Shown here: positions 10,903 through 39,841 of the stretch, piece after piece | Layout of the letters: each line of letters begins with the position of its first letter | Position numbering within the stretch: the stretch's first letter is position 1 | IMG/VR virus record: IMGVR_UViG_3300028840_002431 | Location: 124,001-188,000 of that record | Strand: one strand, 5' to 3' | Length of the DNA: 64,000 nt | Position numbers and translations under genes: made by a program | Notes under the pieces: generated by a model | Database searches by the model: none | Told to the model about the DNA's origin: nothing | Seen by the model: only the letters and a program-made list of their open reading frames with translations

Positions 10903-10932
10903 ACGTCTGAGACGGTGTAATTATATAGACCC

Positions 10933-11739
10933 ATGAGGTCCCACCGTCTCAAAGGCGCATCCTTCCAACCTTCGAGTTGCAACGACAAGCTGAGCAAGGT
11001 ATCGCGCAAGCTCCAATACAACGGCCGCTACGCGAGTCACCCAAAGCCTCCTTACGTCTGCTCCACCTACGTATCCATCGAGGCCACGTGTCCCAAGACG
11101 TGCCGGTTCAAGGACACCGGGTGTTATCCTCAGGTCGGGAACGCGGCTTCGTCGGTCCGGTCCCTGGACGAAGACGCCATGTACGAAGGGCTGACTGGCC
11201 CCGACGTGGCCAAGGCAGAGGCCGAGTTAATCAATCAGGCGTGGCCCAAGGGAGTCCCACAGGACGGCGCTCAAGGAGGCCGGGACCTACGGCTCCACGT
11301 GTCAGGAGAGACGGCGGACACCGCGTCGGCCTGGGCGTTGGGTATAGCCGCCAGCCGTTGGAAAGGTCGCGGGGGAGGTGATGTTTGGACCTACACACAC
11401 AACTGGCGGACCATAGAACCATACGACTTCGGCCCCATATCGGCGTTGGCGTCGGTCGAGACCCAAGAAGAGGCGGAAGAAGCCATCGAGCGTGGGTATA
11501 CCCCAGCCATGGTTGTAACAAAGTTCCCGGCAGACAAGGCTTTTCTGATCCCCGGCACGGGTATGAAGGTCGTCCCGTGTCCAGCCCAGATCCGGACATC
11601 CAAATGTATAACGTGCCGTCTGTGCTTCAAGCCGATGCCGAAGGGTAAGCTTATCGGCTTCCAGTTGCACGGGTTCGGGGCAAACAGGATGGTGAAGAAG
11701 CTTCCCACACTGGGCCAGATGACGATGCCTTGGGCTTGA
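10933..11739 (+). CDS. Cys-rich phage protein (Gp88/DUF7227-like, possibly Fe-S binding)
   Basis: TCPxxCxxxxxGCY, RLHVSG, WTYTH, ASVET, CPAQ, CxxCxLC motifs. Confidence 0.6.
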   Translation: MRSHRLKGASFQPSSCNDKLSKVSRKLQYNGRYASHPKPPYVCSTYVSIEATCPKTCRFKDTGCYPQVGNAASSVRSLDEDAMYEGLTGPDVAKAEAELINQAWPKGVPQDGAQGGRDLRLHVSGETADTASAWALGIAASRWKGRGGGDVWTYTHNWRTIEPYDFGPISALASVETQEEAEEAIERGYTPAMVVTKFPADKAFLIPGTGMKVVPCPAQIRTSKCITCRLCFKPMPKGKLIGFQLHGFGANRMVKKLPTLGQMTMPWA

Positions 11740-11757
11740 TCCGGTGTAAGCTAGGGT

Positions 11758-12012
11758 ATGGCGTCCAAACGCTATTCTAGGTGTACCCGGTGCGGCTCCA
11801 AATTTGATAGGTGGTTGGCGTGCTCCCATATCTACTGCCTCGACTGCCAACCACAGAATAGAAACAAGAACCTCTGGGACCACCTCAAAGACGACTGGCA
11901 GAATTACCTGACGTATACCGAAGAGGAACGAGCCAGAGATGTCCTACTAGATGAAGTCCCTACCCCGGACCTAGGTCCGGGGAGCCGTGTCCAGATTTCC
12001 GGTGTAATTTAG
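11758..12012 (+). CDS. Zn-finger protein with internal LWDHL tag
   Basis: Two CxxC pairs, then KNLWDHL. Confidence 0.6.
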   Translation: MASKRYSRCTRCGSKFDRWLACSHIYCLDCQPQNRNKNLWDHLKDDWQNYLTYTEEERARDVLLDEVPTPDLGPGSRVQISGVI

Positions 12013-12015
12013 ACC

Positions 12016-12414
12016 ATGCTGCCGCAAATACATGAACGTATGCACATGAGCAACGCCTACGCTTTCCTGGCGGAACTCTCAAAAGAGGCCACGCGAGAGA
12101 TGGTGGGGTCGAGTAAGTACCCGATCGAGATGACCGGACAGGGGCCAAGTGCCGGGATGCGTCTGGTCGTTTGCTCCGTCAAAGAACTCGACGACTACTG
12201 TTCCTTTTTGAAAGCGTATGTTGACTCCGAGGTAAACGGAGCGGTTCCGTTGGTCAGGTATTACCAGGGGAAACTAGCGTCCCTGCAAACCGAGATTGAC
12301 GAGGCGTTGGAAAAAGAGGACTGGAACAAAGCTTCACACAGGTTGTGGGACCTGCAAACGACCGGCCAACGGCTACAAGAAAACCTCGACAAGCTCTACA
12401 GCGCTCCAGGATAA
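12016..12414 (+). CDS. Hypothetical protein
   Basis: CGGTG-TAATTT upstream. Confidence 0.6.
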   Translation: MLPQIHERMHMSNAYAFLAELSKEATREMVGSSKYPIEMTGQGPSAGMRLVVCSVKELDDYCSFLKAYVDSEVNGAVPLVRYYQGKLASLQTEIDEALEKEDWNKASHRLWDLQTTGQRLQENLDKLYSAPG

Positions 12415-12415
12415 C

Positions 12416-12988
12416 GTGGTCAAAAAGAAGGACATACCGTTTTACCTAACATGCTTCATTGTCGGGGTTAGTGCCCCTCACACATTCAATTACGGTGTGG
12501 AGCACCCATGGAGAGCGATTCTCATCCTGTCCGGAGTCTTATTGATTTATGCCTTGATCGTCTACAGCCGGACGCTGTCAAAACAAGGGTTGGACGAAGA
12601 ACAAAAGTCGGAGGAGGAAACGGAGTCTGAAAACTATGCGACAGGGGAGGGAACCAGACGGGCAATCGATGAAGAATTTATGAGGGTTGCCGACAACACC
12701 TTGGGTCAACTCGCCGCCCTCGCGGAAGCCTCCGGGCGTTCAGAACCACACAGCGCCATCGGACCCACAGGGCCGGTAGGGCACCCAAACTACTCAGGTC
12801 TGGTGCCACTACAAGGTAGCGTTAGTGCCAGGGAATTGGGTTGCATCTGCCCGCACCCGAACGCCGCTGGTATCGGTCAAACCTTACCCAACCCTAGCTG
12901 CCCGATACACGGATCGAAAGAGCCGGAACCAAAACCAGAACCAGAGCCGGAACCAGAGAAAGATCTCTGGGACCATTTAAGAGGCTAA
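12416..12988 (+). CDS. Membrane protein with GCxCP...CPxHG domain and LWDHL tag
   Basis: Two hydrophobic segments; PE repeats; ends KDLWDHLRG. Confidence 0.65.
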   Translation: MVKKKDIPFYLTCFIVGVSAPHTFNYGVEHPWRAILILSGVLLIYALIVYSRTLSKQGLDEEQKSEEETESENYATGEGTRRAIDEEFMRVADNTLGQLAALAEASGRSEPHSAIGPTGPVGHPNYSGLVPLQGSVSARELGCICPHPNAAGIGQTLPNPSCPIHGSKEPEPKPEPEPEPEKDLWDHLRG

Positions 12989-13058
12989 GGCCGCCACCTT
13001 CCGGAGACGACCTCGTAACTCCTTCTACGCAGATGAGCTACCCAAGGATAACACAGAT

Positions 13059-13511
13059 ATGAAGACAAGCGAGCTATACCTAAAAACCAAAGGGTTTTTC
13101 GTCCACTTGTGTAACATTACAGGTATGCCCGTTCCACGTATCAGGGAACCCGAAGCCCCGGATACCTGTGATTTCACGAGCCATGAAGAAGTGCGGCTCA
13201 ACGTCGTGGGAGCCTACAACGTCACACCGGAACGTCACGCTGCCCACGTCTTTGGCCACTACCTGTGCGACCTTCACGAGTGGGGCAATAAAGAAGATCA
13301 CCCGATCTGCGATGAAATAGCTGACGCCATTGCCGACTTGTTAGACGGCCCGGAGGGGAAAGGCAGTTGTCCTTGTGAATGGACAGAACCATGTGACCCA
13401 CGGTGTACGTGTGTCCATCCGGTCTCAAGCGTCGGTTGTAAGCGATGCTGTCGCTACGGGAGTGACGAGCAACGGAAAGCCCAGGCCGAGCACCTAGTTA
13501 AACATGAATAA
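13059..13511 (+). CDS. Cys/His-rich hypothetical protein
   Basis: HxxxHxxxH and multiple Cys pairs. Confidence 0.6.
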   Translation: MKTSELYLKTKGFFVHLCNITGMPVPRIREPEAPDTCDFTSHEEVRLNVVGAYNVTPERHAAHVFGHYLCDLHEWGNKEDHPICDEIADAIADLLDGPEGKGSCPCEWTEPCDPRCTCVHPVSSVGCKRCCRYGSDEQRKAQAEHLVKHE

Positions 13512-13773
13512 AGACGAAGGACCCAAACTATCTGATGACCCTACCCCCGAAGAACTCAGGGCGTGGGTAGAATACTGGACCCGATGCCCGGCGTGTAAGA
13601 GTAAGCTATCGATGGCCGACGCGGCACTGGGGTATTGCTTCTGGTGCGGGGAGAGTCTGGAATGAGCAAAGTAACGCGGGAAGAACAGGAACGCCAGCGA
13701 CGGATGGAGCATATAGAGAAGCTGGCCAACCGGCGTGAAGAGTCCTATAGCTGGTCCAGATACCAGGAACTGA

Positions 13774-14247
13774 CATGGACGTGAAGAGGTGTATACTTCG
13801 GGCGTGAAAAGATCATGGACGTGAAGGTGTTTCAGGACGGCCGACTGCTTAGGGGTCAAGAAGAGGAAGTTGATTATTTACACAGAGATTCATGGACGTG
13901 AAGATAGAGCTTCATTTCGCCTTACAGATCATGGACGTGAAGGGAGTCCAGGTCCATCGAGATTACTGCCTTAAACAGAGTCGTCCGGGGATAAACGGGT
14001 TGACTTCACATCCCGAAAGCGAGCAAGACTACGGTCACTCGCTAAACTCCCCACGTGGGGAGAGTCCATGATCGAACCGGACGACTCTGTTTAGGGTAGT
14101 AAGAGCAGATCATGGATGTGAAGATCGGGATGACAACCGTAAGAGGGCCAACAGATCATGGGCGTGAAGAAAGACATAGGAATAGGGCCACACGAGATCA
14201 TGGGCGTGAAGGGTAACTTGATAAACTAACAAATCATGGGCGTGAAG
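13774..14247 (+). repeat. CRISPR-like repeat-spacer array, 8 x AGATCATGG[A/G][C/T]GTGAAG, no cas genes in window
   Basis: Copies at 13774-13786 (partial), 13810-13826, 13886-13903, 13926-13942, 14107-14123, 14153-14169, 14195-14211, 14231-14247; non-identical spacers of 23, 59, 22, 29, 25 and 19 bp. Confidence 0.85.
13963..14102 (+). ncRNA. Structured anti-repeat RNA embedded in the array
   Basis: 26-bp closing stem (13963-13988/14077-14102, two G-U), cUACGg tetraloop, split anti-repeat CTTCAC (14004-14009) + GTCCATGATC (14064-14073). Confidence 0.75.
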
Positions 14248-14281
14248 GGGTTACGAGGTTGGTAACTGTTAACAGTTTCGA

Positions 14282-14515
14282 GTGAGGGACCCGGCGATCG
14301 ACTGGACCAAGATCAAGGAACGACAGGACAATAGTCCTGAATGCCGCGACCACGAGGGCGTCTACCGACTGCTCAGCGGGCATCTGTATTACGACAGAGC
14401 GGGCAACCGGTCCCGTATCCTTAGCTTCTGTCTGGATGACCCGGAGCAAGGACCGGTTGTTATCGTGCCGATATTCCCGATCGGGGTAACGCTCTGGGAC
14501 TGTCTGACGACCTAA
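14282..14515 (+). CDS. Small protein with variant tag (TLWDCL)
   Basis: Ends VTLWDCLTT. Confidence 0.55.
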   Translation: MRDPAIDWTKIKERQDNSPECRDHEGVYRLLSGHLYYDRAGNRSRILSFCLDDPEQGPVVIVPIFPIGVTLWDCLTT

Positions 14516-14953
14516 CCCTTCTTGTCGTTCCGAGACAGTAGGATTCAGACCCACACGCCTACGAACGTTGGCGATGGGAATCCTTCCCTATAAAACCCGG
14601 TTTGTGCGGCAAACACGGCCACCATGGCCGTAAAGGCCGTTGTGGAACAACGAACAAACCGATCTCACTAAACACGCTCCGCTATCCCCGTCAACGTGGA
14701 TACGCAATAACCCTTCTGAAGCTTCTAGAGTAGCGTTTTCGCAGAAGAATACGCAGAAGAAAGATATAACCGAGCGATTCGATCGAACCCAAAGCAATGC
14801 AATCCGCCAATATGGTATTTATAGAACGCTTAAACACTTGCAACGACTCAAAGGAGCGTCCTATAGAGTTTAAATGCTGAGAGGTCGAACCAAAGCCGTG
14901 CAAAGCAATCGGTCCAACCTCTCGATTAACCACCCAACAGAAAGGTGATAACC

Positions 14954-15742
14954 ATGAAGGAAGATACCACCCAACCCGCTGTAGATCAAGACGAAGACGC
15001 TACAGAGAGCCAAGACGCCGCTGAAGAACAAAGCACCCCCGGCACCAAGAAGGTGCGCCATCAAGTGCTCAGTCTCCCGGAAGCTGTCGCGGCCATAAAG
15101 CTGCTAGTCAACTCGGGAGGGCCAGACTACAGCCTACAGGACGCTGCCGGTACTCTCGGGGGCAGTATCAATTCCGGCACCAACAAACAGAGGATGGCCA
15201 CCCTCGTGAGGTTCGGTTTTCTCGAAAGGTTGAAGGGGGGTGGTTGGAGGCTCACGAATAAGGGGCGCGTCGTCGCTGAGCGGCCTAACACCCCGGAGTT
15301 TTTCCACATTTGCCAAGAGGCTTTCGAAAAGGCCCCCCACTTCTCTGATATCGGCGCTCGTTTTAGCTGCCGTAAATACGGAGAGGACAACATGCTGCTT
15401 AGGAACTTTGTCCGTATTGACCTCAAGGTTCCTACTAAGAAGACCGTCTCCAAGATCGTCAATACGTACCTGGACTCCCGCAGGTTCTTGGACGGGCTTG
15501 GGGCCGAGCCTGAACACGCCGAAGAGCCAGAACAGCCACGCGAAACTCAAAGCGTGCCGGACGAAACCCCCCTTGTCCCATCCAACGGGAGCCACGCCGT
15601 GTTCCAAGCGGTGGTGGACGGCGCTGTCATAAAGAAGACAGCCGAGACCAAGGACGACCTCCCTCGCTCCGTTCACACCTTCATAGAAATGCTGCGTCTG
15701 GAATTCGCTGACGAACTGAGGGCGTACGCCGAGAGGGCGTAG
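14954..15742 (+). CDS. Winged-helix DNA-binding protein (DUF5343-like)
   Basis: SLPEAV...AAGTLG...NSG...MATLVRFGFLE...WRLTNKGR wHTH pattern. Confidence 0.55.
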   Translation: MKEDTTQPAVDQDEDATESQDAAEEQSTPGTKKVRHQVLSLPEAVAAIKLLVNSGGPDYSLQDAAGTLGGSINSGTNKQRMATLVRFGFLERLKGGGWRLTNKGRVVAERPNTPEFFHICQEAFEKAPHFSDIGARFSCRKYGEDNMLLRNFVRIDLKVPTKKTVSKIVNTYLDSRRFLDGLGAEPEHAEEPEQPRETQSVPDETPLVPSNGSHAVFQAVVDGAVIKKTAETKDDLPRSVHTFIEMLRLEFADELRAYAERA

Positions 15743-15758
15743 CCATTCTAACACGGTT

Positions 15759-15787
15759 CGACCCACCCGGTTGTTTCGGGTGGGTCG
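15759..15787. terminator. Perfect 11-bp hairpin, probable terminator
   Basis: CGACCCACCCG-gttgttt-CGGGTGGGTCG just after a stop codon. Confidence 0.5.
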
Positions 15788-15840
15788 TCGCGTACGCGAT
15801 CGGTGTACGAAATCCAGAAGCCTTGCGCACCGGAGGGAGA

Positions 15841-16356
15841 ATGCCTATTCCAAAGCCAAAGGACACGATCCTCACAGAAGAACAATGGGAGTCGGTTCGT
15901 CGTTTGTCTACTTTAGAACAGGAGATTGCCAGGGACTACTACCGTAACGATTTAACTCAAGCCCAGATAGGGCTACGGCATGGCATGACGCAAGCGGCAG
16001 TATCGACCCGACTGTCAAAAATTAACGAACGTTTGGAGTGGGTACAGCACCTGCCGCCCATACCCACAAGCGACCTCACAGAATTGCTAACGCCCGAATT
16101 CAATTCTTCCACACCGATACTGACAACCTTGTACGAAACGACGTGCCAAAGTGAAACGGCTGTCAGGATGGGTTGCTCGCAGGGGAAAGTCCGGCACCAA
16201 CTCCACAAGGCGGTGGACAAACTCGAAACCCTCGTTGAATCAGGCCGCACTGACCTCGAAGAGGTGCTACGAGGGTTGAGAACGATCCGAGATAGGGACG
16301 GAACACTCCACACCTTCGACCACCCGTCGAGGCGAGTTGATGAAATAAACCCTTAG
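15841..16356 (+). CDS. Sigma-70 region-4-like tandem HTH protein
   Basis: LSTLEQEI...LTQAQIGLRHGMTQAAVSTRL and a second HTH QSETAVRMGCSQGKVRHQL. Confidence 0.7.
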   Translation: MPIPKPKDTILTEEQWESVRRLSTLEQEIARDYYRNDLTQAQIGLRHGMTQAAVSTRLSKINERLEWVQHLPPIPTSDLTELLTPEFNSSTPILTTLYETTCQSETAVRMGCSQGKVRHQLHKAVDKLETLVESGRTDLEEVLRGLRTIRDRDGTLHTFDHPSRRVDEINP

Positions 16357-16404
16357 GTTTTACCCCGTAGCCGGTGTAGTATCTGGGTAAGAGGAGGTAA
16401 AGCC

Positions 16405-17733
16405 TTGGGTTCATTTAACGCTACCTGTGCCATATCCGGACTGCCTATCGGGCCAGGAGACCCCGTCCGGTACCTGCTACTGTCCGGAAATTACAGCGAA
16501 AGAGGGCCGGTCTGTATGCCCTTCGATAAGTGGGAACCAAGGACCTTCCCGATCCGGGCCGAGTATAACGACTACGGTTCGATCGAGAACCCCGAAGAGG
16601 GTATCGGCCCTCAGTTATGGCTCGACGGCCTGAAACGGGACCTCGTCCCACAGGGGTGGGGTGATAACAGTTGCCATGACGTGCCGACCGACCCCGACAT
16701 GACGTGGGGCCAATTGTTAGAAGCCCTGTGGGAGGGCCGGGTATTAATCGACCCCAAGAAAGCCAGGGGCATGTCACTCTTGGACCGGGTCCTGGAAGCA
16801 AGCGACAAGATTCTGCTCGAAAAGGCCCGCAAGAAACGGTTGGACCCGGAGGTGCCGGAAGGCGTGCCGACACTGGAACGGATTAAGAACGTCCTGTCAG
16901 GGCACCCGGCGTTCAACGGCTGGGGTAATGACGGCTTCATGGTGGACGAGACCGAACGAGCCGTGGTCCGGGTACGCTGGCACGGCCAGGATCGTATCGA
17001 CCACCTGGAGACGGCCAGAGACCTACTGAACGAAGGCTACGCGGCCCTGTTAGTCTCAGGGAGCGGCAACTATTCCGACGAGGCAGAGGTGTTGGTCTTT
17101 GCCAAACCGGGCGTACGTTGTGGCCGTGGGATGCACCACGAGGCTTATTACGCACCCCGGCCGGTCGCGCCCATGATGATCCGCGAGGACGTGTGGCAAG
17201 CCCTCCTCAAGCTGGACACCGTGGAACGAAGTCTTTGGGGCAGCGAGGAGATGGGTTCCAAAACAGACCGGAGTCTGGGCGCTTACAAGAAAGCGGTCCG
17301 TGATCTGTACGGTCGAAGGCTGAAACAACAAGAGGTCCTCGAAGCTACCGCAAAGAGCGACCTTGAGGTCGCCATCGAGGCCGTGAAAACCAGCGGTGTG
17401 TACCCGAAACCTAATAGCCTGACCCACGCCCTGGAAGATCCGCTGACCCTGAGTTTCGGGTGGGGAGGCCACTGGGAACTGTTAGTTGACAAGGCGCTCC
17501 CCGCCGAAGAGATAAGCGACACCCTCGACGCCGTAGCCGAGTCACTCTACGTGTGTACGGCTCTGATGTGGGTCCGATACCTGTGGCAGCCGTCGCATAC
17601 GGTAGGGCCTCAGTTTGGTTCCTTCAACATGCACGAGGCTTACCACAAGGCCATGGCCCAGATAGCCTACGAACGGCACGAAGAAGACCGAAAGCAGTAC
17701 GAGGACGAGATAGACGAGGAGGACGCGGAGTAA
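16405..17733 (+). CDS. Phage hypothetical protein (MGSFNxTCxxSGL type)
   Basis: 442-aa ORF; GAGGAGG RBS; YNDYG motif. Confidence 0.75.
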   Translation: MGSFNATCAISGLPIGPGDPVRYLLLSGNYSERGPVCMPFDKWEPRTFPIRAEYNDYGSIENPEEGIGPQLWLDGLKRDLVPQGWGDNSCHDVPTDPDMTWGQLLEALWEGRVLIDPKKARGMSLLDRVLEASDKILLEKARKKRLDPEVPEGVPTLERIKNVLSGHPAFNGWGNDGFMVDETERAVVRVRWHGQDRIDHLETARDLLNEGYAALLVSGSGNYSDEAEVLVFAKPGVRCGRGMHHEAYYAPRPVAPMMIREDVWQALLKLDTVERSLWGSEEMGSKTDRSLGAYKKAVRDLYGRRLKQQEVLEATAKSDLEVAIEAVKTSGVYPKPNSLTHALEDPLTLSFGWGGHWELLVDKALPAEEISDTLDAVAESLYVCTALMWVRYLWQPSHTVGPQFGSFNMHEAYHKAMAQIAYERHEEDRKQYEDEIDEEDAE

Positions 17734-18458
17734 TGCTCGACGCAAAACTGAGACACGTCTACGACAACGGGCTTGACTTGGCTTCCTGGGGTGAGGCTAA
17801 CGCTCCTGACGAACGGCTGATTTACCGTAATGGTGTTGACTCCCAGCTTCGTAAAATCGCGGCCGTTGCGACCCTCCTGCACGACTTCGGCGCTTACGAC
17901 TTACCCCCGCTGGTCGTGGGGAGCCACACGAGCAAATCAGTCAAGCTCCCGGTGACGTGCTTCCGGTTCGCGCCCTACGAACAAGTCGAAGCCTACGTCT
18001 TCGTCCGCGACAACTTCCACAACATCAAGGCCGTGGTGGTTTCTGACTCCCCGATCCACATGCCGTATCACGTGGTCCACATGGAGTGGAGTCCGGAACG
18101 GTACGAAGAAGAACTCAAACGCTACAGCAAATACCACGAGAACGACACGCCAGAAGAAGCTCAGAAACGGCGAGTGTTGATGGCCACAGACGACTGGTTC
18201 AAGGATTGGTCCAGTGGAGTCCTTCTGAGAAAGGACGGGCGCATCTACCGGACCGGCAGTTACCAATCCGTGTACTGCGAAGGCATTGATACGCCGCTAA
18301 TGGCCGAAAACGCCGTGTTCAAGCCATACGAGGACGGTGACAAGAGCTTCGTGTGTGAGGTTGATTCTTACACTATCGTTGCGCGGATCTTGGAGCATGT
18401 TATCGACTCCCTCGAACGAGAACGCTACAAGAGGAACCAGGAAAGCTCCGACGCCTAG
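17733..18458 (+). CDS. Hypothetical protein
   Basis: TAATG overlap; VVGSHTSKSVKLPV...VRDNFH motif. Confidence 0.7.
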   Translation: MLDAKLRHVYDNGLDLASWGEANAPDERLIYRNGVDSQLRKIAAVATLLHDFGAYDLPPLVVGSHTSKSVKLPVTCFRFAPYEQVEAYVFVRDNFHNIKAVVVSDSPIHMPYHVVHMEWSPERYEEELKRYSKYHENDTPEEAQKRRVLMATDDWFKDWSSGVLLRKDGRIYRTGSYQSVYCEGIDTPLMAENAVFKPYEDGDKSFVCEVDSYTIVARILEHVIDSLERERYKRNQESSDA

Positions 18459-18481
18459 ACTTTTGATAAGCCAGTAGGGGT

Positions 18482-18958
18482 ATGAACCCCCGAAAAGCAT
18501 TTGTGAACAGTCTGCTAAAAGAAGCCGCCCGGCGAAAGACCGCCAGCACCCCGGCAGAGGACATCGGAGAGGCGATCAGCCTACTCGATTACTTACCGAA
18601 CGCGGCGGCGGCTTGGCACGAGGCCCACGCGAAAAACCGAGAACTCGCCAAGGCGAACGCCAAGAAGGTTCGACAAGCCGTTGACCTTCTCAGCAATGTT
18701 CTCTCTTCCATGCCAAAGTCCATGCAATATATGGTCGTCGGCCTCGACAACAAGACCTATACCTTCAAGGACGTGGATGACCTCATCGAGGAACTGAAAT
18801 CCCGTGGCATCCGTCATACAGGGTTTCAGGAGGGGAGGCACCTCAGGCCGGAACTGCAAGGGCAGCCGAAGTTCGACAAGCTTCTAGGTCCCATGCATGG
18901 CGGTGGTGGTAAGGTTCGATACGAGACCCAGAAAGTCTACGACGTGCTGAGTCGCTGA
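18482..18958 (+). CDS. NPRKA-leader protein
   Basis: Starts MNPRKAFVNSLLKEA. Confidence 0.7.
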   Translation: MNPRKAFVNSLLKEAARRKTASTPAEDIGEAISLLDYLPNAAAAWHEAHAKNRELAKANAKKVRQAVDLLSNVLSSMPKSMQYMVVGLDNKTYTFKDVDDLIEELKSRGIRHTGFQEGRHLRPELQGQPKFDKLLGPMHGGGGKVRYETQKVYDVLSR

Positions 18959-18976
18959 TCTGGTGTAACCCAAGGC

Positions 18977-19417
18977 ATGACGACAGAAGAAGAAACACCC
19001 ACGATAGCCTGTGATTTCGACGGGGTCCTCAATTCTTACACTTCGGGATGGACCGGGGACACGCTACCCGACCCACCTGTGCCGGGGGCCATCGAGTGGC
19101 TCGAAGACGTCACCAACGAGTGTGACGTTATCATCCACACAGCGCGGATCAAGGAAAGCCAGCCGGGGCAGACAGAACTAATCAAGGCGTGGTTGTTAGA
19201 ACACGGGTTGTCTCCGGAAGCCCTGGCCCGGCTCTCGTTCGAGGGTAAGGTTACGGCTACCATCTACCTGGACGACCGGGGTGTTAGATTCACCGGGGAA
19301 AACTTCCCGACGGCCGAAGAAGTCAAGAACCACAAGGCGTGGAATAAACAAGGGAAGCGGGCCAAGGAAATCAAGAAGGCGTGGGACGACCTGGACGACC
19401 GCTGGAAGTGCAGATGA
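18977..19417 (+). CDS. HAD-superfamily phosphatase/nucleotidase
   Basis: DFDGV motif I, HTAR motif II, YLDDR motif IV. Confidence 0.8.
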   Translation: MTTEEETPTIACDFDGVLNSYTSGWTGDTLPDPPVPGAIEWLEDVTNECDVIIHTARIKESQPGQTELIKAWLLEHGLSPEALARLSFEGKVTATIYLDDRGVRFTGENFPTAEEVKNHKAWNKQGKRAKEIKKAWDDLDDRWKCR

Positions 19418-19643
19418 CAATACCTAACAACTTACGTCAGATGACCGAAGACCAGTTGTGGCAAAGGCTCAAGGACATCGAAGCCGAACAAGGGTATATC
19501 CGGGAGGAAATCCGGAGACGGCTCGACGAACAGCACCCAATTCTATCCCCGGCCATACGGGAAGCGACCCGCAAAGCTCTCTCTACTTAAAGCCATAAAC
19601 GGTGTAGCCTGTACCCGGACCCAAAATATTTCCGGGTAAGCCG

Positions 19644-27459: not shown

Positions 27460-28250
27460 ACCGTGAGGCAGAAGAGCAAATGAAGCGCCTGAAACAAGAA
27501 TGTGCTCTGCTCTGGTGTTGATGGGGTTTTCGCCCAAAAATTGACCGGGGCTAAAATTTTGAGGGTACACCCCCTCTTCCCGGTGTAAATAAAAGGGTAC
27601 CCCATGGCAAGGCTAGGCTGACATACCCGGCCCATGGCTGTGCCCAGGATGGGTGGTGTAGGTGTAGCACTACCTTGTTCCAGGCATGGCCCGCCATGGG
27701 GTCTTTTAGTTGATAAAATCAACTTTTTCTTATAGATTTCCATACCTAACCGATCGCTGACCGTGCGCAAGATGGACGAGCCAATTCCGCGAATTAGCGA
27801 GTCGAAAAAAGATAAGCAAGCGGTTTTAACTTTTCCCCAGTTTATATAATCTATCCCCACCCCCTCCCCCTAGGGGGGTCGGCAACCGCCATGCCTTCAA
27901 GGGTTGCCCCTCCGAGTTACATGACATCGGACATTGGTGTCGTTGTTAGTTTGATCAACTTATCTCACCTATAAGATCAACTATCGCGCCATGCCTTCAA
28001 GGGCGTTGACCTCGTCCTCTGGCTCAGTGGTGTAGTTTATTTTATCAACAACTACACGAGTTGATTATTTGATGTTGCTATCTCACACCTGGGTAGAGTG
28101 GGCCGCCATGCTTGTGAGGGGTACCCCCTCCCCTCCCCCTCCCACCCGGTGTTTATTTTATCAACTGTGAAATGGGTGCAGCGTAAGGCTGTGGCCACAG
28201 GAAAATAATCAACTCTGCGACTACTGGTGTAGGGGTACCCCACAGGGAGG
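27460..28250. promoter_or_regulatory. Long non-coding control region with repeated motifs
   Basis: AT-rich patches, palindrome AGTTGATAAAATCAACT (27708-27724), CGCCATGCCTTCAAGGG x2, several ATCAACT half-sites. Confidence 0.55.
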
Positions 28251-38258: not shown

Positions 38259-38516
38259 ATGTCTCTTTGCGCACAATGCGGCCAAGTCTGGACCACCCCC
38301 GCTCATTGGAGAGGTCTCCATGTCTGGGCAGACGCTCCGGTGAAAGGCGAGCGTCGATGCTGGCGATGTCAGGGCGACCCCTTGTGTCTGGACTGCCCCG
38401 CCGCAATCCTGATATCCACAATCTCCCACACCTGTCCGTCCGAACCTGAGGAGTGTTTCCACCGGGCCAAGCCATTGACATTATGGGGTGCCATTTCCGA
38501 CGCGGGGCGGCTATGA
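38259..38516 (+). CDS. NPLCWxCP zinc-finger family
   Basis: CWRCQGDPLCLDCP; TLWGAI. Confidence 0.7.
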   Translation: MSLCAQCGQVWTTPAHWRGLHVWADAPVKGERRCWRCQGDPLCLDCPAAILISTISHTCPSEPEECFHRAKPLTLWGAISDAGRL

Positions 38517-38688
38517 AACTATACGTACGTGAAGGTTGGTTGACTGGCTTCGTAACCGGGGCCTTCATAGTTGCTGCCACCACACTCATGAGTGAAAAGC
38601 ATTGGGTCCCGGCGACCGTCTTCATGGTCCTCTCCCTTGGGATAATGGCCCTCGAACTCTATGTAGCTAACTCCGACGCGGGGCGGCC

Positions 38689-39108
38689 ATGAAGTCTCCT
38701 CACTCATATTGGTCATGCCTCAGTGAGGACGAGAAGAAGTTCATCCTCTCTTTGGCCGCTAATCTCTCCAAGACGCTTGGCATCGAGCACCCTCCCGGAG
38801 TTAATATTATCAAGTACGCCATGACCTCACTTATCCAGGACGTTCACTCCCACCGGGACATCAAGACTCAAAAGCCTCCCGCTCCGGATGGTGTTCTCGC
38901 CTGTCTCAAGTGCTCCCAGGTTTGGGTCCCGGCCGGGACTCTCTACTGCCAGCGGTGTGAGGGTAATCCCCTGTGTTGGGACTGCCCTGCCCAAAACCCT
39001 GACTGGCGGACCGGGCATTCCCTCGTGTGCCGTGGCTCATGCGACGACCAGAAGAAAACTATTTGGGAGCACTTGATAAAATCAACTACCGACTTGGAAT
39101 CGGTTTAA
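38689..39108 (+). CDS. NPLCWxCP zinc-finger family with extra N-terminal domain
   Basis: CQRCEGNPLCWDCP; TIWEHL. Confidence 0.7.
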   Translation: MKSPHSYWSCLSEDEKKFILSLAANLSKTLGIEHPPGVNIIKYAMTSLIQDVHSHRDIKTQKPPAPDGVLACLKCSQVWVPAGTLYCQRCEGNPLCWDCPAQNPDWRTGHSLVCRGSCDDQKKTIWEHLIKSTTDLESV

Positions 39109-39574
39109 CCCAGAGAGTGATTAATGGCTTGTTCCCTCTGTAACGGCACCAAGCGTATCAAGATGCAGTTCTCCTTACCTACCGAGAGTGAGGCGGCCCG
39201 GCTTGCCGAACTCGACCCCGACACTCCCATATACCGTGACCCCGTGGCCATGGGCCTTACCCTTCCCAAGCCGTTACGCGAGGACTTGGAGCAAGGTTGG
39301 GACAGGGAGTGCCCCCGTTGCTCTTCCGACGCGGGGCGGCCATGACCATCTATTGCTACAACCGGTTCAAGGAGGATGGCGTTGGTCCTAATATTTACCA
39401 CGCTCTGAAAGCGACCTTCATGAGCACGGGCGACAGTAATCGAACCCACTGTGGCGTGGATCTCCCGTCTTCCGTTATCCGTGTTACCGAGTGGCCGCCC
39501 AAGGGGATGCGTAAGTGCAAGCGATGTTTCCGTGACCTTTGGGACCATATTATCAACTCCGAAGCGGGGCGATC

Positions 39575-39841
39575 ATGACCGGTATCGTTTGGCAAGACAT
39601 GGTAGTCGCGGGCGCTAACCTGCTATTCGCCTACTCCATTCTCACTCAAGTCGTCCATGGCTTCCGGGAGAAGAAGGGCTTCATCCTCCTACGTACCTCA
39701 GGGCCGACCACTCTGGGTTTGTACGCCATGGCTGTCGCTTTCTTCACCATCCCCCTCTTCTACTCCGCCTCAGTGGCCGCGTTCAATGCGACCCTCTGGC
39801 TTCTCCTCTTCATCCAACGGCTCATTTACGAGAAGGCGTAG
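39575..39841 (+). CDS. Three-TM membrane protein (PQ-loop/SemiSWEET-like)
   Basis: Three hydrophobic helices; 'SILTQV' at the PQ position. Confidence 0.5.
   Translation: MTGIVWQDMVVAGANLLFAYSILTQVVHGFREKKGFILLRTSGPTTLGLYAMAVAFFTIPLFYSASVAAFNATLWLLLFIQRLIYEKA

Follow-up and report, generated by a model that had tools for sequence, protein, structure and literature searches.

The window analyzed here is a stretch of 64 kb (bases 124001-188000 of the 416,539-bp viral contig IMGVR_UViG_3300028840_002431; this one 64-kb window was read), and the same sequence recurs in an IMG/VR contig of 173 kb and in assemblies from JGI and ENA; the source samples are JGI 3300017963, 3300017991 and 3300028840 and ENA ERZ27256773. 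At 13770-14247 of the window, eight copies of a 17-nt direct repeat, (AG)ATCATGGRYGTGAAG, lie on the + strand, four on each side of a 164-nt gap. The gap contains a central element for which a long stem is predicted, and two separate segments of this element together complement the repeat. Nearly all genes of the window are small ORFans, the + strand carries the genes from ~8 to 30 kb, and every repeat copy is oriented like the + strand genes that flank the array. The genome is densely coded, and it is unusual for it to leave 0.5 kb, or up to 1.2 kb, non-coding.

The first repeat (R1, 13770-13786) is degenerate, with 2 mismatches in a 15-mer core. R2 (13810-13826), R3 (13887-13903, with a 1-nt insertion in its 5′ half) and R4 (13926-13942) are of the GGAC type, R5 (14107-14123) is of the GGAT type, and R6 (14153-14169), R7 (14195-14211) and R8 (14231-14247, first G changed to A) are of the GGGC type; all are on the + strand. 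The 15-mer core, with ≤3 mismatches allowed, matched the window 18 times against 4.5 expected, a number that was reached in 0/100 shuffles, and all matches with 0-1 mismatch lay inside the array. These counts support the eight direct repeats, four per side of the 164-nt gap, that an initial annotation of the same DNA had listed; its polarity of variants was likewise seen (GGAC in R1-R4, GGAT in R5, GGGC in R6-R8), as was its description of the repeat as non-palindromic and shorter than those of CRISPR arrays, the conserved unit being 17 nt. The only invariant parts of the repeat are CATGG and GTGAAG, and the flanks extend the conservation by ≤2 nt. A half repeat, GGGCGTGAAA (13800-13809, +; GGGCGTGAA at 13800), consists of the 3′ half only and abuts R2, and another half repeat, GGCGTGAAG, lies at 13732. 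The decayed repeat that the initial annotation had suspected near 13850 is plausible: a possible copy at 13853-13868 (+) in the 60-nt spacer has 10/16 identities, which is marginal (~0.05 by chance for that spacer), and its spacing of 42 and 35 nt agrees with the period of the array.

Successive repeats are separated by 23, 60, 22, 164, 29, 25 and 19 nt. Their start-to-start distances (40, 77, 39, 181, 46, 42 and 36 nt) do not run in multiples of 3 or of the helical turn, which argues both against coding and against cooperative DNA binding. An ATG is contained in each repeat copy, with no Shine-Dalgarno sequence and in frames that differ among copies. As the distances are not multiples of 3 and the repeat ATGs have no ribosome-binding site, the array was taken to be non-coding, and a coding repeat or a set of mini open reading frames (ORFs) was rejected. 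GATC is present in each repeat, and the region ties as the densest GATC cluster of the window; GATC avoidance or a GATC decoy was rejected, the frequency of GATC being as expected. A CsrA-type GGA sponge was also rejected, since GGA is present in just 5/8 copies (R1-R5). The arms on both sides of the central element have no more predicted structure than chance (z about 0) and, of all 170-nt segments of the window, they rank in the 0.1-0.3% that are poorest in C and most skewed to G. A candidate sigma-70-like promoter (CTGACA, 16 nt, TATACT; 13770-13797, +) was identified by consensus match only; with 10/12 consensus matches it is the best site in 13000-15200, and its predicted start (~13804) is just before R2. 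Its -35 hexamer, and the stop codon of a 40-amino-acid (aa) ORF, are overlapped by R1. Two small hairpins after R8 (14250-14277, +) have no U tract and would be a weak terminator at best.

Bases 13963-14102 are predicted to fold as a 26-bp stem topped by a multiloop with three small hairpins, at -81.4 kcal/mol on the + strand (z = -8.9) versus -67.3 on the - strand (z = -4.4). In the predicted + strand fold, the closing stem has its 5′ arm, a candidate RNase III processing stalk, at 13963-13988 and its 3′ arm at 14077-14102, and R5 begins 4 nt past it. The stem is formed by 24 Watson-Crick pairs with one G.U and one U.G pair, and these two would be A.C and C.A on the - strand. Inside the stem, the short anti-repeat CTTCAC (14004-14009, +; 14004-14013 with the ATCC that follows) complements the GTGAAG of every repeat. 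Two predicted hairpins, HP2 (14018-14043, +) and HP3 (14047-14062, +, a perfect 16-nt palindrome), lie between it and the long anti-repeat GTCCATGATC (14064-14073, +), which complements GATCATGGRY of the repeat. The longer short-side segment CTTCACATCC is complementary at 10/10 positions to R5, and to R5 alone. The sequence CGGGGATAAAC at the top of the stem (13986-13996) is similar to the type I-E CRISPR repeat of enterobacteria at its 3′ end, a likeness that we take to be probable chance, and no upstream hairpin of the kind that Cas6e needs accompanies 13986-13996.

Set antiparallel to the repeat, GTCCATGATC and CTTCAC cover its first ten and last six bases, that is 16 contiguous bases, with neither gap nor overlap; such collinear coverage of 16 bases was obtained in 1/20,000 dinucleotide shuffles of the central 164 nt. 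On the + strand, R2 and R4 pair with this split anti-repeat by 16/16 Watson-Crick pairs, and R5, R6 and R7 by 15 Watson-Crick pairs and 1 G.U pair. R8 forms 14 Watson-Crick pairs, 1 wobble and 1 terminal mismatch, and the degenerate R1, over the 16 positions, 13 Watson-Crick pairs, 1 wobble and 2 mismatches. The variable repeat positions (A/G and C/T) face U and G, so that they are paired on the + strand and form A.C and C.A mismatches on the - strand. Because the variation of both the repeats and the stem is compatible with G.U pairing on the + strand only, it points to RNA-RNA pairing on a + strand transcript, and the splitting of the anti-repeat is directly explained by base pairing. The split anti-repeat had been missed in the initial annotation, and it makes the latter's proposal of a processed guide or antisense RNA credible; to that proposal of a precursor are now added that the locus is non-coding, is not CRISPR and has a structured central gap, and that the fold and the G.U pattern favor the RNA level on the + strand.

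Upstream of the array are a 150-aa Cys-rich protein, a 53-aa zinc ribbon and the 40-aa ORF. Downstream of it, a doubtful 77-aa ORF (GTG start, no Shine-Dalgarno sequence, no family match) is followed by 430 non-coding nt (14516-14944) and then by a gene for a 262-aa winged-helix protein. For 14516-14944, structure prediction gave modest significance on each strand (z = -3.3 for + and -4.0 for -), and a degenerate repeat-like copy, ACCATGGCCGTAAAG, was observed within this stretch at 14621-14635. The 262-aa protein (predicted local distance difference test score 76) gave only generic winged-helix matches; no relative was obtained by word search and one by HMMER, 32% identical and on a 1.2-kb contig. 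A 171-aa protein with two sigma-70 region-4 domains comes next, and these two predicted DNA-binding proteins lie 0.7-1.6 kb downstream of the array. About 2 kb downstream, a 442-aa protein (16405-17733; N-terminus GSFNATCAISGLPI) belongs to a family of >300 proteins. Members of this family are on many contigs of about 280-470 kb, evidently those of a megaphage clade, and the gene belongs to the core set of that clade. No cas gene was recognized in the window with Pfam, PHROGs, PADLOC and NCBIfam (longest ORF 442-458 aa), in line with the initial annotation, and the ten neighboring proteins gave no Cas or defense match in these four. No codon-specific signal of stop-codon reassignment was seen in the window, and a large effector hidden by stop-codon recoding was rejected for this reason.

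In 15823-17733, the sigma-70 region-4-like gene ends with TAG at 16354-16356, in frame with the 442-aa gene that starts at 16405. The shared frame may reflect a read-through fusion or be accidental, as it would be one time in three; the two pieces were searched separately. Within 10915-19640 the motif (T)CCGGTGTAA stands 8-12 nt before the next ATG at several genes (e.g. 11740-11754, 11998-12012 and upstream of 18977), and a Shine-Dalgarno sequence is present at only some starts; several genes appear to end Gly-Val-stop, or the motif may be a re-initiation signal. Other repeats of the window were of different kinds. A 25-nt repeat, AAGAACCTCTGGGACCACCTGAGAG, with 14 copies in 21107-56206 (e.g. 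41949, 46824, 52679, 55901 and 56182), encodes the peptide motif (K/T)(N/T)LWDHL(K/R) and is not a DNA signal. The motif is ≤~10 residues from the end of an open frame of 58-186 aa in 12/14 copies, and may be a tail tag, serving for example in sorting or packaging, that a family of small megaphage proteins shares. A 22-nt GC-rich motif, TCCGACGCGGGGCGGCYATGA, has four copies in 38496-39579, 176-653 nt apart, each ending in ATGA or ATGAC, possibly a shared gene start region.

The main alternative to RNA pairing, and a serious rival although we consider it unlikely, is that a phage protein binds the repeats as double-stranded DNA sites (iterons), at an origin, partition site, pac site or operator, and that the central inverted repeat is a DNA structural element. 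Classical iteron origins (P1 incC/incA, F, RK2) have the form of direct repeats of 17-22 bp that cluster in two blocks; R1 parC has 5 + 5 repeats around a promoter, P1 pac has 4 + 3 GATC-containing hexamers around the cut site, and repeat clusters that serve as DNA sites are common in phages. The two blocks of short direct repeats around a central element are of this form, with GATC in every repeat as in P1 pac and in a region that is jointly the densest GATC cluster of the window. The two predicted DNA-binding proteins are nearby, and the locus is invariant among all contigs compared. Such sites would not, however, be expected at irregular distances of 36-77 bp that are out of helical phase (3.4-7.3 turns), and at a GC content of 44-54% no AT-rich unwinding element adjoins the repeats. 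No DnaA-box cluster was found, no Rep, Par or terminase gene was recognized in the window, the cumulative GC-skew minimum of the window is near 8 kb, away from the array, and the winged-helix protein, with its generic matches, had no Rep initiator or terminase among the 50 structure-search matches listed. The two halves of the anti-repeat are 54 bp apart and therefore could not be read by a protein that takes a 17-bp duplex site as its unit; neither the split anti-repeat, nor the wobble compatibility of all variation on one strand only, nor the strand asymmetry of the spacers is explained or predicted by such sites. If the repeats are protein-binding DNA sites after all, they would mark an origin, pac site or control region in a megaphage clade for which, to our knowledge, none is known. 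Elsewhere in the window, near a switch from the + to the - strand, 27855-28165 holds a dense non-coding repeat cluster with C-rich tracts, two exact 17-mers 100 nt apart and two exact AT-rich 15-mers (GTTTATTTTATCAAC) 116 nt apart, and this cluster is a better candidate for an origin or regulatory region than the array.

The exact repeat 17-mer has no second site in the 416-kb genome, so that the only perfect partners of the anti-repeat are its own flanks. For a 17-mer of the stem arm, this locus was the only site, whether in the 416-kb genome or across the 2.9 million contigs of IMG/VR. This bears on the origin of the central 140 bp: an existing repeat array could have been the landing site of a miniature transposable element whose terminal inverted repeats are 26 bp long. 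The 140 bp do have the size and terminal inverted repeats of such an element, and a 3-bp GAG duplication possibly flanks them; the element is nevertheless a single copy, with no other in the window, and an unrelated element would not bring with it a perfect split complement of its target. We regard this origin as most improbable.

Four contigs of this phage were base-for-base identical over 2-6.8 kb, array included. The spacer comparison proposed with the initial annotation accordingly gave no turnover among them, and, as their flanks are identical too, it is uninformative on that point. Nothing useful came of blastn searches with the locus in the phages of INPHARED and the plasmids of PLSDB, and repeat-pair patterns in IMG/VR recovered the same phage only, twice. 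A scan of metagenomes gave at least 120 matches, and all those inspected were rejected as having no relation to the array; they were tandem repeats of coding or satellite type, a hairpin-repeat region (L063) and a REP/RAYT locus (L064, L161). Both of the two matches in GTDB genomes were also unrelated. The hairpin-repeat region, 2 kb at 2100-4100 of L063 (Ga0213832_1000023, 510 kb), has composite repeated units of ~180-340 bp, built of conserved hairpins of which some loops are CACATGGATGTGAAG; it is unrelated to the array and was recovered through the search pattern only. In the nearest relative (L136/L137; 68-77% protein identity), one unrelated 253-aa gene replaces the ~5 kb at 13347-18485 of the window, which hold the array, the winged-helix gene, the sigma-like gene, the 442-aa gene and a 241-aa gene, and the cassette is therefore in a variable segment. 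Three relatives that carry the 442-aa gene (L131, L132, L134) have no array near it. In another relative (L138), a Dam methylase gene was seen to adjoin the homologue of the Cys-rich domain.

The spacers were searched for targets, as had been suggested, and no match was found for any of them in the window, INPHARED or PLSDB, nor for spacer 5 in IMG/VR. Spacers S5 and S6 have AGGGCCA..AC in common, and the units of R2 and R4 are 85% alike over 27 nt. This homology of neighboring spacers points to duplication and divergence, and with the lack of matches it speaks against the record of sequential insertions that was the second proposal of the initial annotation. The whole cassette might be a functionless by-product of recent local duplications, a ~40-bp tandem unit and an inverted duplication that later took up an insertion. 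The homology between units that extends past the repeat, the half copies at the left edge, the lack of the ~5-kb segment in the nearest relative and the lack of such an array in the relatives examined are all as expected of a relic. It is hard to reconcile with one, however, that the halves of the inverted copy are intact at 16/16 positions while the spacers diverged, that all changes keep the pairing on one strand, that the stability of the central domain is far above chance and that 0.5 kb (up to 1.2 kb) of non-coding DNA is kept in a densely coded genome; a relic is accordingly given only a small probability.

We tentatively favor, with a confidence a little short of even, a self-contained repeat/anti-repeat RNA module that is made from the + strand and in which a scaffold resembling a trans-activating CRISPR RNA (tracrRNA) is nested in its own array. 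A transcript of ~0.5 kb would start at the promoter-like site near 13804, or arise by read-through from the upstream genes, and its two unstructured, C-poor arms would each hold the 17-nt motif three to four times. Between the arms, the core domain closed by the long stem (26-30 bp, perfect) would fold first. Long duplexes, as in rRNA processing stalks and in duplexes of tracrRNA with CRISPR RNA (crRNA) precursors, are substrates of RNase III, and host RNase III could cut the stem, freeing a core RNA of ~100 nt and separating the arms. The core would expose single-stranded CUUCAC on its 5′ side and GUCCAUGAUC on its 3′ side, with two hairpins between, and both segments could pair with 16 contiguous bases of each repeat (10 + 6 bp) in a four-way junction. 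Each repeat so paired may be marked for cleavage, for loading into a protein partner or for both, the products being unit RNAs of ~36-46 nt with a repeat-derived handle followed by a variable tail of 19-29 nt.

Several points weigh against this account, in which transcription, RNase III cutting, pairing in vivo, processing and guide function are all inferred. In the minimum-energy fold the anti-repeat strands are partly occupied, GUCC being paired with GGAU and CUUCAC being in the loop of a weak hairpin. An intact stem makes the pocket a closed loop, in which a long RNA could form 10 + 6 bp only with topological difficulty; the pocket is out of reach of R5 in cis, since just 4 nt separate this repeat from the stem base. 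A single anti-repeat would have to serve seven or eight repeats. Few independent substitutions underlie the G.U asymmetry, namely 2 stem positions and 2 positions of the repeat. Spacer length varies irregularly from 19 to 60 nt, there is some homology among the spacers, and none had a match in the sets searched. No effector or nuclease gene was recognized in the 64-kb window, and the terminator scan did not call the hairpins at 14250-14277, leaving no clear terminator past the array. No homologous locus, as cross-species covariation would need, was found in INPHARED, PLSDB, IMG/VR, GTDB or the inspected metagenome matches. The feature itself is real and unusual; it is a singleton with a concrete, testable pairing model and a putative function.

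The pairing could also be real with no guides made. The arms would then be a sponge or timer for the core, a small RNA with a target among host RNAs, or one receptor would link seven ligands in a multivalent RNA assembly. This possibility, which we consider quite unlikely, draws on the same pairing evidence as the guide-forming module; irregular and target-less spacers and the lack of an effector gene nearby are accounted for, and unstructured C-poor arms suit accessible binding platforms. On the other side, one small RNA per seven decoy sites in each transcript would neutralize the small RNA, the motif has no second copy in the phage genome, and self-assembly is speculative and without precedent for such an architecture. 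Little credence is given to the further-reaching version of the self-contained module, namely an RNA-guided or RNA-processed system of a new kind in a megaphage, independent of Cas, Tas and IS110, with a scaffold released from a mid-array stalk, a split 10 + 6-nt anti-repeat and 17-nt handles, by which at least seven short RNAs would be made for an unrecognized phage or host effector or by host RNases alone.

If the pairing is real in vivo, the locus would be a repeat/anti-repeat RNA module without a recognizable Cas partner, and it would bear on how large non-coding regions are used by huge phages. With its scaffold within the array, not beside it, the module would also inform the origin of guide arrays and of scaffolds of the tracrRNA type. 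The split-duplex handle of 16 nt is short, simple enough to be tested and, if functional, would be reprogrammable.

The cassette was compared with known systems. A CRISPR array was rejected, since the unit is 17 nt against repeats of ~23-55 nt, the gaps of 19-164 nt are not near-constant, the spacers have no foreign matches in the searched sets, and S5 and S6, like the units of R2 and R4, are homologous. A phage mini-CRISPR array or a repeat mimic (Racr, a crRNA-like regulatory RNA) that uses or blocks a host Cas protein was considered separately. Cas-less mini-arrays and solitary repeat units are known in phages (PMC10651486; bioRxiv 10.1101/2024.10.29.618823), and the tracrRNA-like geometry would suit an RNA that hijacks a type V or type II effector of the host. 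The repeats nevertheless fall below the CRISPR range and the spacers are irregular and matchless. Neither a tRNA nor an Rfam family was found in the window: no Rfam match was obtained at gathering thresholds, and at E up to 10 nothing relevant was listed, the tracrRNA and CRISPR direct-repeat families included. A mini-array or mimic is accordingly very unlikely.

ToxI (type III) arrays and phage pseudo-ToxI are likewise tandem, with a period of about 36-45 nt; ToxI arrays are transcribed and cut into units, and in phages they are known as decoys. A ToxI-like array was rejected because only 17 of ~40 nt per unit are conserved, whereas whole ToxI units are near-identical. ToxI, moreover, has no spacer or anti-repeat and precedes a toxin gene of ~170 aa, in contrast to the doubtful 77-aa ORF found here. 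TIGR arrays have two alternating repeats of 8-12 nt, spacers of 9-12 nt, a 36-nt unit and an adjacent Tas protein with a Nop domain (PMC12045711). They are also short-repeat arrays of phages that are unlike CRISPR, with units of ~36 nt after processing; TIGR-Tas was rejected, as one 17-nt repeat with gaps of 19-60 nt is present here and no Nop match was obtained among the neighbors.

In the bridge (seek) RNAs of IS110/IS1111, an internal loop carries two guide segments for one short target, often of repeated sequence, and the IS110 guides pair with opposite DNA strands (PMC11208160). Both segments here are reverse complements of the + strand repeat and no DEDD recombinase was found, and a bridge RNA was rejected on these grounds; the cassette also differs in having no second loop and being a single copy. 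In the H/ACA pocket, as here, both strands of a hairpin internal loop pair with one contiguous target, the upper hairpins being between them. H/ACA was rejected because the 3′ pocket strand enters the stem after 3 nt and no ACA lies 14-16 nt off. In addition, the pairing is gap-free, with no unpaired target dinucleotide, the lower stem is three times longer, and the context is that of a bacterial phage in which no Cbf5-like gene was seen.

An anti-repeat complementary to the array repeat, as a tracrRNA has, was found here (10 + 6 nt, 16/16), and no Cas9 or Cas12 effector was found within the window. As in type II systems, one RNA would pair with all repeats of an array transcribed along with it, and RNase III would have a long duplex to act on. 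In type II this is one continuous duplex of 25-40 bp used with Cas9, whereas the long duplex here is intramolecular and the pairing with the repeat is split and short. The tracrRNAs of types V-B, V-F and V-G pair with the repeat through two duplexes (PMC11246509). The cassette is unlike them in that the long duplex is 10 bp, the repeat is 17 nt against about 36 in type V, the scaffold is inside the array and within a 26-bp stem, the spacers are irregular and partly homologous, and the window holds no Cas12 or RuvC protein. As in the type V-B, V-F and V-G RNAs, its anti-repeat has a short 5′ part, of 6 bp against the 5-7 bp of type V, which structured RNA separates from a longer 3′ part, and the repeat is read as the long part, the short part and then the spacer on the 3′ side.

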